32,184 nucleotides of DNA from Ginglymostoma cirratum. Lineage: Eukaryota. The stretch covers positions 772,401 through 804,584 of the forward strand of contig JAHRHZ010000282.1 in NCBI GenBank assembly GCA_024137785.1, read 5' to 3'. The translations under genes and the position numbers were made by a program. How positions within the stretch are numbered: position 1 is the stretch's first letter; each line of letters opens with the position of its first letter. The notes beneath the pieces were generated by a model that was given only the letters and a program-made list of their open reading frames with translations, was not told where the DNA came from and ran no database searches. This document shows, piece after piece, positions 5,828-26,880 of this stretch.

Positions 5828-5866
5828 GGTTTTAGTATAGCCTCTCCCTCTATTTGTAACACTGTG
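5828..5866 (-). other. 23-bp-spacer recombination signal sequence
   Basis: CACAGTG (5866-5860) + 23 nt + ACTAAAACC (5836-5828), directly after ...YLCAADG. Confidence 0.95.
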
Positions 5867-6201
5867 CCATCAGCAGCACAGAGATAGGTGGCAGTGTCGT
5901 TCAGTCTGGCGTCTGTCACCCTTAGGGCACTGTGTTTGTAGTCTGCACTGATTGAAGCGGTGATCCTCTCGCCTTGATCAGTTTCTGTCTTCGCCGTCAC
6001 CAGATGCTGGGGTGGATGATTCGCGAGTTGTCGGTACCAAAGCACCACGGTAAATCTTGTGGTTGTAGAGCAGTTCATGGAAGCGATTCCTGTTTCGCTA
6101 ACAATTGTCCACTGGGGAAGTTGCATTACTTCATCTTCTCCGGTCACTTCTGTGTAGATCAGAGTGGCAAGCAACAAAAGAAATCTGTAAATTTGAGACA
6201 T
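5867..6201 (-). CDS. T-cell receptor V gene segment (TRAV/TRDV-like), intact ORF, signal peptide apparently contiguous with the V exon
   Basis: MSQIYRFLLLLATLIYTEVTG-EDEVMQLP...MNC...LWYRQ...ERITAS...SALRVTDARLNDTATYLCAAD. Conserved Cys23, Trp41, D-x-A-x-Y-x-C104, short CDR2 region and a near-consensus 23-RSS. Confidence 0.93.
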
Positions 6202-11883: not shown

Positions 11884-12207
11884 TGCTGTGAGACTCATAG
11901 CACATTAATAGAGCGTGATATCAGACAGCGGTAGACCCGAGATTGTCAATTGGTACAACTTGTCTGACTGCTGGACTGTATCAAAAAAAACTGTTCTGAG
12001 TGAAATCCACCTTCAATTTCGGACCACCGCTCTTGTACCTCCGGACTGCAAGCTCGGGTTGACAGCATGGGTGCTGATGGGACCAGAATAAGGAATACGC
12101 TTGGTCAGCGTAGGTGCAGTTAAAGTGACATATTCTCCCTCTGTCAGTCTGAGGGAGGGCTCCCGCTGAGAAACAGAAATTCTATCGCCAAGATCCGAAA
12201 CGCAAGG
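11884..12207 (-). pseudogene. TCR V (alpha/delta-like) pseudogene with heptamer remnant
   Basis: Acceptor ctctttcttcag| at 12208. ISVSQREPSLRLTEGEYVT/NCTYADQAYSLFWSHQHPCCQPELAVRRYKSGGPKLKVDFTQNSFF/DTVQQSDKLYQLTISGLPLSDITLY*CAMS, then CACAGCA (11890-11884). No recognisable nonamer. Confidence 0.9.
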
Positions 12208-13074
12208 CTGAAGAAAGAGGAAATCATTTAATAAAACTTAACTTGAATTAGTGTACAAAAAAAGTCTTATTCAGTGTGACATGAGATTATACAGGAATTT
12301 ATACCTCAATATAACATCAGAAGAACTGGTCTATATCCGTGTTATCACTTCAAAGAAGAAATGCCCTTTCGCCTTCTTCTGTTTCTATCTGCATGTCCTT
12401 ATTTCCATCTCGCTTTCACTTATTTACCTGACGCCTCTTTCATGAATCTATGGATTTGATTCAACCGCCCTTGGCGCCAGTGTGTTCCGTCGTCTGAAGC
12501 GTACTTAGGATTCTGTTACTGTTTCTTTTAGTTCTTTTTTTACTCTTACACTTAAGAATCGCAGTTTTTGGAATCTTCCCCAGTCCAAAACATTATCTTT
12601 ACGATTATCCTGCCAAGAAATCTTCATCAGTGTAAACACGATTTTATCGTTACTTGAGGGAAGAAAAATGTCCGTTTATGTAATCTGTTTCAAATGCATT
12701 GTCCCTTAATACTGAGATCATCGCTGTAAATATTTTTGTGCGTTTCGTGTCACTTTCGTATTCTTACATGATGGAGAGAAAATCGGTTCACAATTGCTCA
12801 AATGCAATGCAGCCAAAGTCCGATGTTTGTTGAAAAGAACACTGGTTTGTTTCACTTTCAAAAATACAGAAAATGAACTGCACAATATCAAATAAGACAG
12901 AGGAAAAAAGGGTTCCGGTAATCATTACAGTTGAGCTATTTCAAGAATATGTTCAGGAAGTGGAAGACAAGTTTAAAATAAAAGCCGCACTTAAAATGTT
13001 GCGAGATAGACAGGACTCAGAAGAATGAAATACTGATGTAATCTGTGGGTAATTAATTCACGTTTTTCTTTCTG

Positions 13075-14620: not shown

Positions 14621-14954
14621 CTTAATAAAATGAAGCTGTTTTAGATTAGAGATAGTATGTCATTTCAGTCTTAACAATTAGTGGCTTCAGTTGATGGAGG
14701 CAGAAATGCATTCTTTTTTAGGAAAGGACAAATGCAAACCTTGCATTTATCAGTTCACATACAGATATAATTCGGCATTCACCCAAGCAATAAACCGCGA
14801 ATTCGTCTGTTTGTTTGCTGAACTGTAACTAATATGCATGCTGTGTTTTTATAATGTTTCTGGTGACTCTCTGTTGGGATAAATAAGGACCGATTTCAAT
14901 GTGTCAGAGAAATAAGGTTTGCAGTTTCTGAAGTTGTTTTTGTTCCTGGAAAAG

Positions 14955-15024
14955 ATGCACGGACCAGCGAATGGGCTGTTGTTTGCCATTTGCTACCCCA
15001 TTCTCGCCTTTATTGGTGCACCAG
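14955..15024 (+). CDS. Class A GPCR (GPR139/GPR142-like), coding exon 1
   Basis: ATG..MHGPANGLLFAICYPILAFIGAP+G|GTCAGT, phase 1. It supplies the first half of TM1 and joins exon 2 to give G-A-P-A-N (the TM1 GxxxN motif). Confidence 0.88.
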
Positions 15025-16311
15025 GTCAGTAACTGATCTCAGTAAGTCATTTTATGAATATTTATTAATTTAGTTTCTCCACTTTTAGGATCAATCCGAA
15101 TTTTTTCCAACATTCCGTGCTCTACTATGTGACTAGATGGTACGGTGGCAAGTTATAGAACATTATTTGCACTTGTGGTATGGAACATGAAACGAAATTT
15201 TTCAACGTATTATGCAACATGATTATAAAAATATCGCATATTAGATTGCTGAAATATGAATCATCATGAATGAAATATGCTCAATTCGATTATAATTAGA
15301 TATTATCTCCATGTAGCAAAAAACTCATCTAGCGTGTTTAATGTTTCTTGTTAAGAATAATATTAGTAACATATTGCATGAATATTTAACATGTTGATGT
15401 GGTCAGCGAAATTAATCCTGGAGACTTTTGAATGTGACTGGCAGTGCAAGAACTTCTACAGATTATACTTTTGCTTTGTCCTGATAGGTGTTGTAAATTT
15501 TGCTTTTAATTTTATTAATTAAACTTTTTCATCCTTAGGCGGCTGTTGCTCGTTCTAGCAAGGAGATTAACTTCATAATAGAGTTTGTTTGTATCTTCAG
15601 TTCTTGCCGTATGTTTGGTGGGGATGCCGCTTAGCATGTATTACAAATAAATTTGACTATGAAGTACGGAAGGAGATATCGATTTTGATACCCAGATCCT
15701 TGATCTAAGAGATATTATAAAGTATGTCCCGAAATAGACTGGCGGGCGAGAGTAGTTGAGGAAGTGAATAATGGAGATCTGAACTTCTACATGTAAATTC
15801 ACAACTGCTGCTGAGTTAAGTATTGGTATCATACCAGAATTACAGTTACAGTGATCACAGATGGCTGTACAATTTTACGGATGATAGTGGGAAGATTGCA
15901 CCATTATTTCAAAATCAGGATGCATGAGACTATTATAACCCTGAAGTTGCTGGATGAAATGCCAATGTAGACCAGGAAGTATTGATGTCATGAATGTACG
16001 AGACTTGTTATGAATAACAGATCAGACAGCAAATGGCTCAAATGTGTTTAGATTGGGTAGGAAGCTGTTCGTGTCGTCTCAGTGGTCATATAAATGCGTT
16101 TGTCTCTGGAAGGGTTGGGGATTTCTCATCTGTGGAGAAATGTTTGCTCCCAACATTGGCTCCAGAGCAACTACCAAAGGCTTTGGAATAGTTAATCCGT
16201 GGAGATACCACTGGATGCATCTGGAGGGGTTCTGCAATAAGATTTCATGAGGCTGTAGCTTGTGTTTCGAATTCACCTTATGATATATTCCTCCCTTGTT
16301 ATCTTTCACAG

Positions 16312-17213
16312 CCAACTTGTTAGCGATTATAATTCTATCCAAAGGGCAGTGCGGGCTCTCGGAGTGCATCACTTACTACCTGGTGGCCATAGCAGTGAGT
16401 GATTTCCTTGTCATCATCACAGGTGGGATTCTTAACAGAATTGGTCGTATTTATTTTAGCTACAATATTCTTTCCACTACCCCTAGCTGCAGTCTAAATG
16501 CGGTGCTGGTGTATGCAGCCCGGGATTGCTCTGTCTGGCTGACAGTAGCCTTCACAACTGACCGTTTTGTGGCCATCTGTTGCCAGAGATTGAAGAACCT
16601 ATACTGTACTAAGAAATTTGCATCGCTGGTCTTAGGAGTAGCCTGTGCCCTAAGCTGTGTCAAGAACACCCCTTTCTATTTCATTTATCAGCCCATGTTT
16701 TTCCTCGAAGGGATGCCCTGGTTCTGTGATATCAAGCCCACGTTCCACACTTCACCTGCCTGGCAGGCTTTGCACTGGCTCGACCGAGTCTTAGCCCCAT
16801 TTCTCCCATTCCTTCTCATTCTTATGCTCAATGCTCTGACAGTCAGACACATTGTATTGGCCAGCAGAGCACGCAAGAGGCTCCGAGGTACTGAGAATTG
16901 TGAAGATCCAGAGATTGCAAACCGCAAGAGGTCCATAGCCCTGCTCTTTGCAATCTCTCTCAGCTTCCTCCTCCTGTGGGCCACCTATATTGGTCGCTTC
17001 CTCTATCGATTGCTGGCACATGAGGGGTACATCAGCAGCCTGAACTTCAAAGATCCACAGTACATCCTTCAAGAAACAACCAACATGCTCCAGATAATCA
17101 GTTCCTGCAACAATGTCTTCATCTATGCGGTAACTCAGAAAAAGTTTCGAGAGGAGCTAAAAAGAGTGCTGATGTGTCCTTTCACCACTCTAACTGGATG
17201 CTTCAAATGTTAA
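16312..17213 (+). CDS. Class A (rhodopsin-family) GPCR, GPR139/GPR142-like, coding exon 2 (spliced protein 323 aa)
   Basis: Acceptor atctttcacag| at 16311, then an uninterrupted ORF. Motifs: TM2 AIAVSD, TM3 Cys and SVWLTVAFTTDRFVAIC, ECL2 WFC, TM5 LPF..LN, TM6 FLLLW, TM7 NVFIY, helix 8 KFREEL. SVW.T...T.DR and a Pro-less NxxxY are GPR139/142-type features. Confidence 0.93.
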
Positions 17214-17729
17214 AAAAAAACACCAAATCACCATACCGAATCTACTGATGACCATCAGTGTCAGTGTGCCCGAGAATATAACACTTTCATTTTACAAGTA
17301 GTAAGTAGTAGATTTAAACCGCAAGAGTAGAGAAATATAAGATAAAAACTCTCAAGGCGCGTCAGTGCACTAAACAAAATGCTGAAGAAATTCTGAATGA
17401 CCAGAGTTCATGCTTTTCTGGGTGGAACTTCTGTCCAACTTCTGAATGGAACATAAAATGCACCTCGTCGTTTCATTAAATAATAACACGAGTTATCTCC
17501 ATAGTTCTGAGTCAATATTTATCCTTCATGTAGAAAGCAGGGACAGGGCACTGAGCAGATTAGAAGAGATATAGCCTATTTTCCCCTCATGTTTTGTATG
17601 TTTCTGTGTTAACAGTAAACAAAAAATCTGATTTCTGCTTATTTTTGTGATTACTGTTCTGAAGTACTGGACTTTACCTCTGCACGGCTGATGCCACTTT
17701 TTTTTTGCATCACAGTAGGAATGTGTATA

Positions 17730-17810
17730 ATTTCTTTCTTCCTTCCTTCCTTCCTTTCTTTCTTTCTTTCTTTCTTTCTTCCTTTCTTTCTTCCTTTCTT
17801 TTTCTTTATT
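17730..17810. repeat. (TTTC/TTCC)n microsatellite
   Basis: Directly visible. Confidence 0.95.
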
Positions 17811-17811
17811 T

Positions 17812-18205
17812 TTGTTGCAGACCCGAGATCGTTAAACAGGTGTATTTTCTTGAGATCTCAGCAGAGAAACGGATTTTAGAAAATTCTGCTTTCGTGCACC
17901 ACCGTTCGAGCATTCAGAGAATACAAACTCAGACTGTGAGCCGTTGCTCATACCATGGGACATAATAGCTAATCCATGTAGTTTCGAAGGCACAGGTTAA
18001 AGTTAGTATTTGTTTTGTCTTAACATCTGAGGCTGAGTGACGGAAATTCCATGCTCAGATTTGAAAATGTTTAATCGGAAAAATATCAGATAGACTGGTG
18101 TTCAAAATTTAAATTAAAACATTGTTCAATTTGAAACGTGTTTTGTCTGTAATTACCTGTCAGAAATGCTCCCCTGACAAGTCAGACACTGGTCAGTTGC
18201 AGCCT
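17812..18205 (-). pseudogene. TCR V pseudogene with leader exon (18205-18157) and V exon (~18061-17812), 3'-truncated
   Basis: Leader (AGG for ATG)LQLTSV*LVRGAFLT+G|GTAATT; ~95-nt intron; SEHGISVTQPQ/ILTLTCAFETTWISYYVPWYEQR/SQSEFVFSECSNGGA/KAEFSKIRFSAEISRKYTCLTISGLQ, then the microsatellite. Confidence 0.88.
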
Positions 18206-20989: not shown

Positions 20990-23682
20990 AGAATTTTCAT
21001 CAAGTTAGATGTTCAAATCAAATGTTCCAGTGTTTCGATGTTTCAAAAGAAATAGGGAAGGTGGTAAAAGAGGTGAGGGAGTGGCTTTGTTCGTCAGGGA
21101 TGGCATCACAGCTGCAGAAAGGGAGGTATGGGTAGAAGTCAGAAACAGGAAAGGAGCAGTCACTTTATTGGGAGTTTTGTACAGACCCCACAATATCAAC
21201 AGAGACACTGAGGAACAGACTGGGAGGCAGATTTTGGAAAGGTGCAGAAGTAATAGCATTGTTGTCATGGGTGACTTCAACTTCCCTCGTGTAGACTGGA
21301 ACATCTTTAGTGAAAATAGTTTGGATGGACCACTATTTGTCAGGTGGATCAAGGAAGGATTTCTATCTCAAAATATAGATAGACCGACTAGAGGGGAGTC
21401 CATATTGGATTTGGTGCTTGGCAAAGAACCAGACTAGGTGTCAGATCTCTCGGTGGGAGAGCATTTCGACAATAGTGACCACAACTCCCTGAACCTTTAC
21501 TAAAGTCATGGAAATGGATAGGGTCAGACGATATGGGAAAGTATTTAATTAGTGGAGGGGGAATTAAAATGTTATGAGGCAAGAACTTCGAAGCGTAAAT
21601 TGGGAACAGATTTTCTCAGGGAAATGCACGAAAGAGATGTAGAGGTTGTTGAGGGAGCAAATGCTACGAGTACTGGATGGGTTTCTCTCACTGGGGCAAG
21701 GAAGGGGTGGTAAGGTGAAGGAACCTTGGATGACAAGACATGCGGAACATCTAGTCAACAGGAAGAAGAAAGCTTGCTTAAGGTTGATGAATTAAGGATC
21801 AGCCAGTGTTCTAGAGAGCTACAAGGTAGCCAGGAAGGAACTGAAGAATGGACTTAGGAGAGCTAGAAGAGGGGTATGATAAAGCCTTGGCGGGTAGCAT
21901 GAAGGAAAAGCCCAAGGGGCTTGTTTTTTTACTTATGTGAAGAACAAGAGGATGGCCAGAGTGACGGTAGGGCCCATCAGAGACAGTGGAGGGAACTTGT
22001 GTGTGGAGTCGGAGGAGGTAGGGGAGGTCCTTAACGAATACTTTGATTCAGTATTCACCCATGAAAGGGACCTTCACGGATGTGAGGACAGCGTGAAACA
22101 GGCTAATATGCTCGAACAGGTTGATGTTTAGAAATTTTGAAAAACATGAGGATAGATGAGTCCCCTGGGCCAGACGGGATATACCAAAAGGTTACTACGG
22201 GAAGAAAGGGAGGAGATTGCTGCGCCTTTGGCGATGATCTTTGCGTCCTCGCTGTTCTCTGGAGTAGTACCAGATGATTGGAGGTTGGCAAATGTTATTC
22301 CCTTGCTCTAGAAAGGGAATATGGATAATCCTGGGAATTACAGACCAGTGAGTCTTACTTCTGTAGTGGGCAAATTATTGGAGAGGATTCTGAGATATAA
22401 TATTTATGACTATTTGGAAAAGCACAGTTTGATTAGAAATAGTCAGTATGGCTTTGTGAGGGGCTGGTCATGACTCACAAGCCTTATTGAATTCTTTGAG
22501 GATGTGACAAAACACATTGATAAAAGTCGAGCAGTGGATGTGGTGTATCTGGATGTTAGATTCATTCAGAAAGTATGGAGGCATGGGAGTCAGGGAAATT
22601 TGGCTGTCTGGATGCAGGATTGGCAGTCCAATAGAAGACAGAGGGTGTTAGGAGATGGAAAGTATTCAGTCTGGAGCTCGGCGACCAGTGGTGTTTTGCA
22701 GGGATCTGTCCTGGGATCCCTGCTCTTTGTGATCTTTATAAATGACTTGGATAAGGAAGTGGAATGGGGGGTTAGGAAGTTTGCCGATGACATGAAGTTT
22801 GGTGAAGTTGTGGGTAGTGTGGACGGCTGTTGGCATTTGCAATGGGACATTGACAGGATGCAGAGCTGGGCAAAGAAGGTGCAGATGGAATTCTAACCGG
22901 TAAAGTCTGAAGTGATTTATTCTGGAAGGTCGAATTTGAATGCAGAATACAGCGTTAATGGCAGGATTCTTGGCGGTGTGGAGGAACAGCGGCATCTTGG
23001 GGTCCACGTCCATTGATTCCTCAAAGTTGCTACCGAAGTTGATAAAGTTGTTAAGAAGGCTTATGGTGTGTTGGCTTTCATTGGCAGGGGAATTGAGTTT
23101 AGGAGCCGTGAGGTTATGCTGCAGTTCTATATAGCCCTGGTTAGAACATCCTTGGAATATTGTGTTCAATTCTAGTCGCCTCATTATAGGAAGGATGTGG
23201 AAACTTTAGAGAGGGTGCAAAGGAAATTTACCAGGATGATGCCTGGACTGGAGGGCAGGTCTTACGAGGATAGGTTGAGGGAGCTAGGGCTTTTCTCATT
23301 GGAGCAAAGAAGGATGAGAAGTGACTTGATAAATGTGTGCAAGGTGATGAGAGGCGTTGATAGAGTGGAGACACAGAGGGTTTTTTCCCCCCAGGGCAGA
23401 AATGATTATTACGAGGGGACATAATTTTAAGATGATTGGAGGAAGATAAAGAGGAGATGTCTGAGGTAGGTTCTTTAGATCGATAGTGGTGCGTGAGTGG
23501 AATGTGCTGCCAGCGGTGGTAGTGGAGTCAGATACATTACGGACATTTAAGCTACCCTTGGATAGGCACGTGGATGATAGTAAAATGTAGGGTATGCAGG
23601 GTAGTTTGATCTCAGAGTAGGATAATAGGTCGGCACAATATCGTGGGCCGAAGGGCCTGTACTGTGCTATACTGTTCTATGT
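20990..23682 (+). mobile_element. CR1-clade LINE, most of ORF2 (endonuclease + RT), inactivated
   Basis: Endonuclease motifs GEGVALFVR, LYRP, MGDFNFPRVDW, PTRGESILDLVL. RT motifs SPGPDG, PGNYRPVSLTS, QGSVLGSLLFVIFINDLD, KFADD, LERVQRKFTRM. Tail ...ctgttctatgt. Many stops. Confidence 0.96.
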
Positions 23683-26199: not shown

Positions 26200-26549
26200 G
26201 TGAGTATTTTATAGTCCATTCCAGGAACTGGGTATTATATACCGTCTATATTATCTATATAAAACGATTCTGAAGCGATCTCTAATATGCTACTGGATGT
26301 ATGAAGTTGCGCAAACGTTATCCCTTGAAGAAATTAATCATTGCGGAAGTCAGCATTGAAATTATGGATTTCAAAATATTGTATTGTGACAATTAAATGT
26401 TGCATATTTAAGAAATAACGTGGTTTCATAACAGGAAAAATACACTATGTCTTTTGGCTGTTGTTGATCTACAATTTTTTTGTACAACGGCAGCCCGACC
26501 TCTTTGTTTCTTGTTTACTTGAACATGGATATTTTTCATGTTTCCTCAG

Positions 26550-26841
26550 GCAGTGGCCTTGGAAATGAAGTATTACGATGGCCCATTTCCAGAACAGTCG
26601 AGCTGGGAGAACCAGCGCAGTTTGATTGCAAATTCAACAGCTTGAAGATATCAGACTTTCAATGGTACAAGCTGAATGCAAATGGACGGCTGGAGTGGGT
26701 CATGACCAGCACCGAAAGCGGGAAGAATGTAGTCGGACGATGGGAGATTATGCTTGAAATAACCGAAAGGAGAGGCTACTTCGTGTTCAGAAGAACAACA
26801 ACGTTGGATTCTGTAGTATTTTACTGCGTAATCCAGGCACT
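26550..26841 (+). CDS. T-cell receptor V gene segment exon (TRAV/TRDV-like), intact ORF
   Basis: Acceptor tttcctcag| at 26549. SGLG-NEVLRWPISRTVELGEPAQFDCKF...FQWYK...LEWV...GRW...LDSVVFYCVIQA with Cys23, Trp41 and Cys104, followed by a 23-RSS. Confidence 0.9.
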
Positions 26842-26880
26842 CACAGTGACATTAATAAGAGAGACCACAGTTCAAAAGGC
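26842..26880 (+). other. 23-bp-spacer recombination signal sequence
   Basis: CACAGTG + 23 nt + TCAAAAGGC (6/9 to consensus ACAAAAACC). Confidence 0.88.

Follow-up and report, generated by a model that had tools for sequence, protein, structure and literature searches.

A class A receptor gene of an expanded elasmobranch family among T-cell receptor V segments of the nurse shark

We analyzed a 32,184-nt stretch of Ginglymostoma cirratum DNA (hereafter the window, which is the only DNA that was read) and focused on a two-exon gene on its + strand, at positions 14955 to 17213, that is predicted to encode a G-protein-coupled receptor (GPCR) and that lies among T-cell receptor (TCR)-type variable (V) segments. 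The reading that we favor, and in which we have moderate confidence, is that this gene encodes a functional orphan class A GPCR of a large, elasmobranch-specific birth-and-death family, and that it persists as a selected passenger within a working TCR V array. The evidence lies in the intact structure of the gene, in the slow change of its protein, in the distribution of its relatives and in the identity of one flanking V segment with the V part of a TCR beta protein.

Structure, class and conservation of the receptor gene

The 23 codons and one further base of exon 1 (positions 14955 to 15024, + strand) comprise the start codon and encode a very short N-terminus together with the first half of transmembrane helix 1 (TM1). 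Exon 1 is followed by a phase 1 intron of 1287 nt with GT..AG borders (15025 to 16311, + strand) and by exon 2 (16312 to 17213, + strand), which provides the remainder of TM1 through TM7, helix 8 and the stop codon. The ATG at 14955 has an A at position -3 and in-frame stops upstream of it, the donor reads CAG/GTCAGT at 15024/15025, the acceptor CAG follows a polypyrimidine tract at the intron end (16311), and the frame of exon 2 stays open until the TAA at 17211-17213, such that the two exons (70+902 nt) make up 323 codons and a stop. In searches and alignments, exon 1 (14955-15023) and exon 2 (16314-17210) were treated separately, and the structural model and the trees were likewise made exon by exon. 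Exon 1 encodes 23 residues (MHGPANG...IGAP) that include the first, hydrophobic half of TM1. This peptide lines up, column by column, with the N-terminal ends of 323-aa homologues in Mustelus, Rhincodon, Heterodontus, Cetorhinus, Stegostoma, Scyliorhinus, Heptranchias and a ray, Narcine, indicating that the two-exon layout is the standard of the family. Together, the splice sites and this family-wide layout bear out the initial annotation, which described a stop-free 323-aa seven-TM gene with canonical splice sites. A candidate polyadenylation signal (ATTAAA, 17475 to 17480, + strand), found as a pattern match, lies 262 nt past the stop.

Within the intron, positions 15538-15609 (+ strand) correspond to an alternative first exon (..AVARSSKEINFIIEFV.IFSSCP) that is used in the whale shark RefSeq model P0123 (XP_048475037.1) and in the EukProt model P0001, where it joins the same acceptor and replaces the family exon 1. 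This intronic exon is probably a misprediction, in which case the whale shark model differs from the gene described here by a wrong first exon; it could also be an alternative 5′ exon.

The translation of exon 2 matches the Pfam profile 7tm_1 with an E-value of 8e-20 and 71.9 bits (cut-off 30.5), over profile positions 2-260 of 260. Pfam also returned a weak match of exon 2 to the chemoreceptor-type profile Srx (E 0.0023), and no 7tm_4 match for the gene. The AF2 model, made for the exon 2 part only (pLDDT 84, pTM 0.80), displays long helices, a beta-hairpin in extracellular loop 2 and a C-terminal helix, which is the fold of a class A GPCR, and the 500 matches that Foldseek reported for this model all have E<=0.001, every listed one being a class A GPCR. 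Based on the 7tm_1 match and on the modeled seven helices with helix 8, the gene is thus predicted to encode a class A (rhodopsin-like) GPCR. The end of TM3 reads DRF instead of DRY, which is the norm of the family (74 of 80 homologues), and the motifs NPxxY of TM7 (here NVFIY) and CWxP of TM6 (here LLLWATY) both lack their proline, again as family-wide variants.

The gene had initially been labeled GPR139/142-like. Among solved structures, human GPR139 (PDB 7VUG and 9M42) is indeed the best sequence match (37 bits, E 2.4e-8), with a lead of just 6 bits over NMUR2 and 19-22% identity in structural alignments; moreover, the TM7 proline is absent in both proteins (NVFIY in the shark gene, NFFLY in GPR139), and the LWA core of TM6 is common to both. 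In contrast, the top matches by fold are peptide receptors, namely the ghrelin receptor, NMUR2, TRHR, MCHR1, NTSR1 and galanin receptors, so that receptors for ghrelin, neuromedin-U, thyrotropin-releasing hormone and melanin-concentrating hormone outrank GPR139, which comes tenth. In addition, “GPR139-like” proteins of a salamander, the coelacanth and a teleost score 92-138 bits, compared with 37 for human GPR139, which places the gene in a separate clade rather than among GPR139 orthologues. The label therefore describes the nearest solved relative by sequence and does not extend to orthology; these comparisons suggest that it is a loose label, taken from the nearest named receptor, for an old and separate clade with a great expansion in elasmobranchs.

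The best match of the gene is the whale shark protein XP_048475037.1, at 97% identity (8 differences over 299 residues). In a tree of 119 rows, which held no bona fide shark GPR139 or GPR142, the two are sisters with a support of 100, a path of 0.029 and a long stem of 0.22, and they nest in a small clade of orectolobiform paralogues. Throughout the tree, many one-to-one pairs within Orectolobiformes stand alongside order-specific expansions, indicating birth-and-death evolution. A 4490-nt contig of a related species spans positions 14716-17500, intron included, with 122 mismatches and 10 gaps (~95.6% identity), showing that the locus is orthologous and old; DNA contigs of the same species also carry the intron, in pieces that are 99-100% identical. 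A recent retrocopy was ruled out by the family-standard intron and by the orthologous intron in the related species.

The divergence of the related-species contig over the same 2.8 kb provided a neutral expectation of 4.4%, at which ~30 amino-acid changes would be expected in exon 2. Only 8 are seen, a ratio of ~0.26 (Poisson P 2e-6) that assumes both that the related species is the species of P0123, the whale shark, and that the regional mutation rate is even. Of the 99 columns that are >=90% conserved among 80 full-length homologues, the protein also retains 95, with conservative replacements in the remaining four. These results suggest purifying selection on the gene, with protein change at about one quarter of the rate of the surrounding DNA. 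The initial annotation had proposed that the gene is either under selection or recently arrived: the ratio and the retained columns speak for the former, whereas the 97% identical orthologue and the orthologous intron speak against the latter.

The zebra shark, the epaulette shark and the bamboo sharks have no annotated protein that is more than 74% identical to the gene, despite the 97% identical orthologue in the whale shark. Either the close orthologues were lost in these relatives or they are unannotated.

V segments and repeats around the gene

V segments bearing a recombination signal sequence (RSS) flank the GPCR gene, V1 at 8.7 kb on one side and V2 at 9.3 kb on the other. V1 (positions 5867 to 6201, - strand) is an intact V segment with its leader contiguous with the V exon (V-set E 1.4e-10), and is adjoined by a perfect 23-RSS (5828 to 5866, - strand) composed of the heptamer CACAGTG, a 23-nt spacer and then ACTAAAACC. 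Over 111 aa, leader included, it is 100% identical to P0121, a 160-aa protein of the cDNA type composed of V, joining (J) and constant (C) parts. In its J-C part, P0121 shows 92% identity to “T-cell receptor beta chain [Ginglymostoma cirratum]”, with no difference at the start of the constant region. Since V1 equals the V part of a protein with a TCR beta J-C, it appears to be an expressed V-beta, and the cluster no dead orphon. An orphon V cluster unlinked to any J-C had been named in the initial annotation as a finding that would refute its reading; for V1, the full match to a TCR beta V-J-C protein speaks against a dead orphon. From the sequence match, V1 is best regarded as a used V-beta, although the genome may carry a second, identical copy of this V at another place.

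P0121 is collinear with the genome across all 111 residues, such that V1 has no leader intron. A word search with V1 gave 4 candidates. Compared with solved structures, V1 has TCR alpha chains as its best PDB matches in 60 cases out of 60, yet it is joined to a TCR beta J-C: either alpha-like Vs occur among the shark V-beta families, or V1 serves more than one locus. An assignment of the array to TRA/TRD on V similarity alone was rejected, since V1 occurs with C-beta; the assignment to TRB is made for V1 and not for the array as a whole, in which remnant B, described below, resembles V-delta-1 or V-alpha.

V2 (26550 to 26841, + strand) is an open V exon that is VH- or TRAV-like. Its V-set score of 23 bits (E 9e-5) is below the cut-off of 26 bits, its conserved Cys, Trp and Cys are kept, and VH and TCR alpha match it about equally in the PDB. 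It is followed by a 23-RSS (26842 to 26880, + strand; CACAGTG, 23-nt spacer, TCAAAAGGC), and no leader exon is recognizable within 250 nt upstream. The region 26480-26880 (+ strand) thus combines a good heptamer and a 23-nt spacer with an odd framework (FQWYKL, VFYCVIQ), and V2 is possibly a TAILV-type V or a decaying one. The claim that intact RSS-bearing Vs lie on both sides consequently stands for V1 and, as regards the RSS, for V2, but not for the completeness of V2, with its V-set score under the cut-off and its leader not found.

Two V pseudogenes had also been reported. The downstream one, here remnant B (17809 to 18054, - strand), extends from framework region (FR) 1 to FR3 and is confirmed by a phmmer search of the PDB, in which it matches FR1-FR2 of TCR V-delta-1 and V-alpha chains with an E-value of 5e-5; its motifs read LTLTC..WYEQR and RFSAEIS..LTISGLQ. 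The upstream one, pseudogene A (approximately 11908 to 12237, - strand), remains a tentative candidate, with stops, frame problems and FR1/FR3-like motifs in the six-frame translation (..EGEYVTLT.. and ..LTISGLPLSDITLY, the latter followed by a stop and CA); it has no significant match (PDB E 0.55, nothing in Pfam). Neither pseudogene was found by tblastn with V1 and V2, and Pfam returned nothing for the stop-free pieces of both. A low-complexity repeat (17700-17810, read as FLSFFL or KERKKE), 0.5 kb past the GPCR stop, truncates the 3′ end of remnant B.

Relative to these elements, the GPCR gene on the + strand is antisense to V1, A and B; it stands head-to-head with A, 2.7 kb apart, and tail-to-tail with B, 0.6 kb apart. 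With RSS-bearing Vs on both sides and with V1 assigned by its sequence to a rearranging locus, the gene appears to be a non-antigen-receptor gene within a TCR V array.

The initial annotation further suggested that the gene may be one unit of a V+GPCR cassette co-duplicating with the array. This suggestion was not upheld: comparison of the window with itself revealed LINE copies and no V+GPCR repeat unit, no second GPCR fragment was found in the window, one GPCR stands there against four V-like elements, and its three nearest Vs lie on the opposite strand. The LINE (long interspersed nuclear element) copies are decayed. One, with endonuclease and reverse transcriptase parts, lies between the GPCR and V2 (21009 to 23682, + strand; Pfam Exo_endo_phos_2 E 6e-9, RVT_1 E 3e-4), and the second is inverted (16-1603, - strand) and 81% identical to positions 22129-23682 of the first. 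These two inverted copies enclose most of the V-GPCR-V stretch.

The receptor family and the possible roles of the gene

A word search returned 1379 relatives, the best 120 of which all belong to sharks and rays, with 53-97% identity, and are nearly all named “probable G-protein coupled receptor 139” by the automatic pipeline of NCBI. An exhaustive search of representatives gave 1603 matches at E<=0.001, and 101 clusters, defined at the 50% identity level, at E<=1e-30. Outside cartilaginous fishes, the closest proteins are “GPR139-like” ones of a salamander (34%), the coelacanth (32%) and one teleost (31%), followed, among more distant relatives, by proteins of lamprey, amphioxus, a nemertean and molluscs. 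The elasmobranch “probable GPR139” paralogues, XP_048475037.1 among them, form the same family as the gene described here, with which they share the 323-aa length and the two-exon layout.

The closest paralogues are clustered: a single whale shark scaffold of 11.7 Mb carries at least 12 of them, and the basking shark, zebra shark and bamboo shark show comparable concentrations. Fused gene models place members of the wider family beside hemopexin, TRIM, hexokinase, voltage-gated sodium channel, integrin-alpha and uromodulin genes; these non-immune neighbors show that the wider family also occurs outside antigen-receptor loci. As a proxy for V adjacency, we searched 20 long fused representatives of the family for a V-set domain, and none was found. 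In one model, P0235 (UniParc UPI0004572981), a type I membrane protein with an Ig domain is fused to helices 1 to 3 of a family member; the Ig-like match is weak, and the Ig-domain part looks like a separate membrane gene of the immunoglobulin superfamily (IgSF), which hints that an IgSF gene adjoins a paralogue in another genome.

The literature on GPR139 in sharks, elasmobranchs and cartilaginous fishes yielded no paper on the family or on its genomic neighborhood, and TCR-locus and genome papers yielded nothing relevant on GPCR or olfactory genes. According to the whale shark genome paper, GPCRs and olfactory receptors are scarce in cartilaginous fishes; this receptor family is not mentioned there. 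The proposal that the family is undescribed is in keeping with these searches, which found no describing paper, and with a database annotation that is automatic only.

Because the window holds no V+GPCR unit and the wider family also lies beside non-immune genes, we regard the gene as a passenger of the array. In the model that we favor, some non-lymphoid tissue would express the receptor from the gene's own promoter; that this tissue is sensory or neural is a guess, based on the size of the family and on the similarity to peptide and amino-acid receptors. Upon binding a small peptide or an amino-acid-like ligand, the receptor would signal through G proteins. The position of the gene may have arisen by block duplication and decay within the V array, in the manner of the trypsinogens in mammalian TRB, and T cells that join a V beyond the gene would lose it on excised DNA, without consequence.

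Several observations weigh against this model. No J or C segment is present in the 32,184-nt window, and linkage of the array to D, J and C segments is hence not seen there. The sequencing-run search for the gene gave only DNA-like contigs, intron included, and no RNA run; these contigs span the exon-intron borders, and no splice joint is seen in them. Moreover, the nurse shark branch is longer than that of the whale shark (0.023 vs. 0.007), two of the changes relative to the whale shark orthologue, at positions 51 and 171, fall in columns that are >=90% conserved, and the selection ratio depends on the two assumptions given with it.

A specific version of the favored model, possible but in our view rather doubtful, holds that the family consists of overlooked odorant or tastant receptors of elasmobranchs, expressed in single sensory neurons, and that the TCR neighborhood is incidental. 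Elasmobranchs have very few classical olfactory receptors. GPR139, the nearest solved relative by sequence, responds to aromatic amino acids and peptides, and amino acids are fish odorants. The very large lineage-specific expansion with its birth-and-death tree, the very short N-terminus, the single coding intron and the weak Srx match agree with such a role, as does the scarcity of receptors reported in the whale shark genome paper, where the family is not mentioned. Conversely, the many one-to-one orectolobiform pairs with long stems suggest a slower turnover than that of typical odorant receptors, and the fold resembles peptide-hormone receptors in general.

It is unlikely, by our estimate, that the family spread as V-plus-GPCR blocks in shark TCR loci and is expressed or regulated in lymphocytes, with V(D)J recombination deleting or inverting the gene or bringing it near the enhancer, and thereby causing clone-specific dosage. 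The gene does lie between Vs, one of which appears to be a used V-beta, and its closest paralogues are concentrated on one scaffold per species, as seen on the whale shark scaffold mentioned above. However, the absence of a V-GPCR repeat unit from the window, the antisense orientation to V1 and to both remnants, and the single GPCR for four V-like elements are not what such a spread would produce, and the wider family sits beside hemopexin, TRIM, hexokinase, sodium-channel, integrin and uromodulin genes. The run search, with its DNA-like contigs only, and the mammalian analogues also argue against it: neither the trypsinogens of TRB nor the olfactory receptors of TRA/TRD are lymphocyte genes. 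As a matter of logic, any gene so placed could vary in dosage between clones; for this gene, the idea would gain support only from lymphoid expression.

Still somewhat less probable is a silent open reading frame, in which the frame would be intact merely through the slow change of shark DNA and the gene would no longer be expressed or needed. The run search without an RNA match and the slightly faster nurse shark branch are compatible with this explanation. The same holds for the annotated proteins of the zebra, epaulette and bamboo sharks, among which no orthologue exceeds 74% identity, suggesting that close relatives have lost the gene. Against it stand the amino-acid change at about a quarter of the neutral expectation, the 95 of 99 conserved positions retained with conservative replacements only, and the start, splice sites and frame, which are intact while neighboring Vs carry stops. 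Finally, we consider it very improbable that the family was co-amplified with Vs across the TCR loci and is expressed in developing or mature lymphocytes such that V(D)J recombination gives each T-cell clone its own receptor set or dosage.

Comparison with mammalian TCR loci

If the favored model holds, cartilaginous fish have an arrangement of the trypsinogen-in-TRB type in which the embedded gene is a GPCR. This suggests that, since early jawed-vertebrate history, unrelated genes have been sheltered and co-amplified in V arrays. The very large elasmobranch family, annotated automatically until now, is also a candidate for a missing sensory repertoire of these animals. Should its interleaving with Vs prove systematic, the family could serve as a natural experiment on how bystander genes in lymphocytes are affected by somatic deletion and by proximity to an enhancer.

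Two mammalian arrangements invite comparison. The trypsinogen (PRSS) genes of TRB are passengers and are lost by deletion when a T cell uses a more distal V. They resemble the case described here in that an unrelated, functional, tandemly duplicated family lies among the Vs of a TCR locus that rearranges; in the shark, V1 at least is a flanking V that is apparently used with C-beta. The differences are that the shark gene encodes a GPCR and not a protease, that it is present as one copy in the window, and that the window contains no J or C-beta. The olfactory receptors at the 5′ border of mammalian TRA/TRD are likewise rhodopsin-class GPCRs of an expanded family next to or among TCR Vs; unlike them, the shark gene belongs to another GPCR clade, with no 7tm_4 match, and has V elements on both sides, inside the array.

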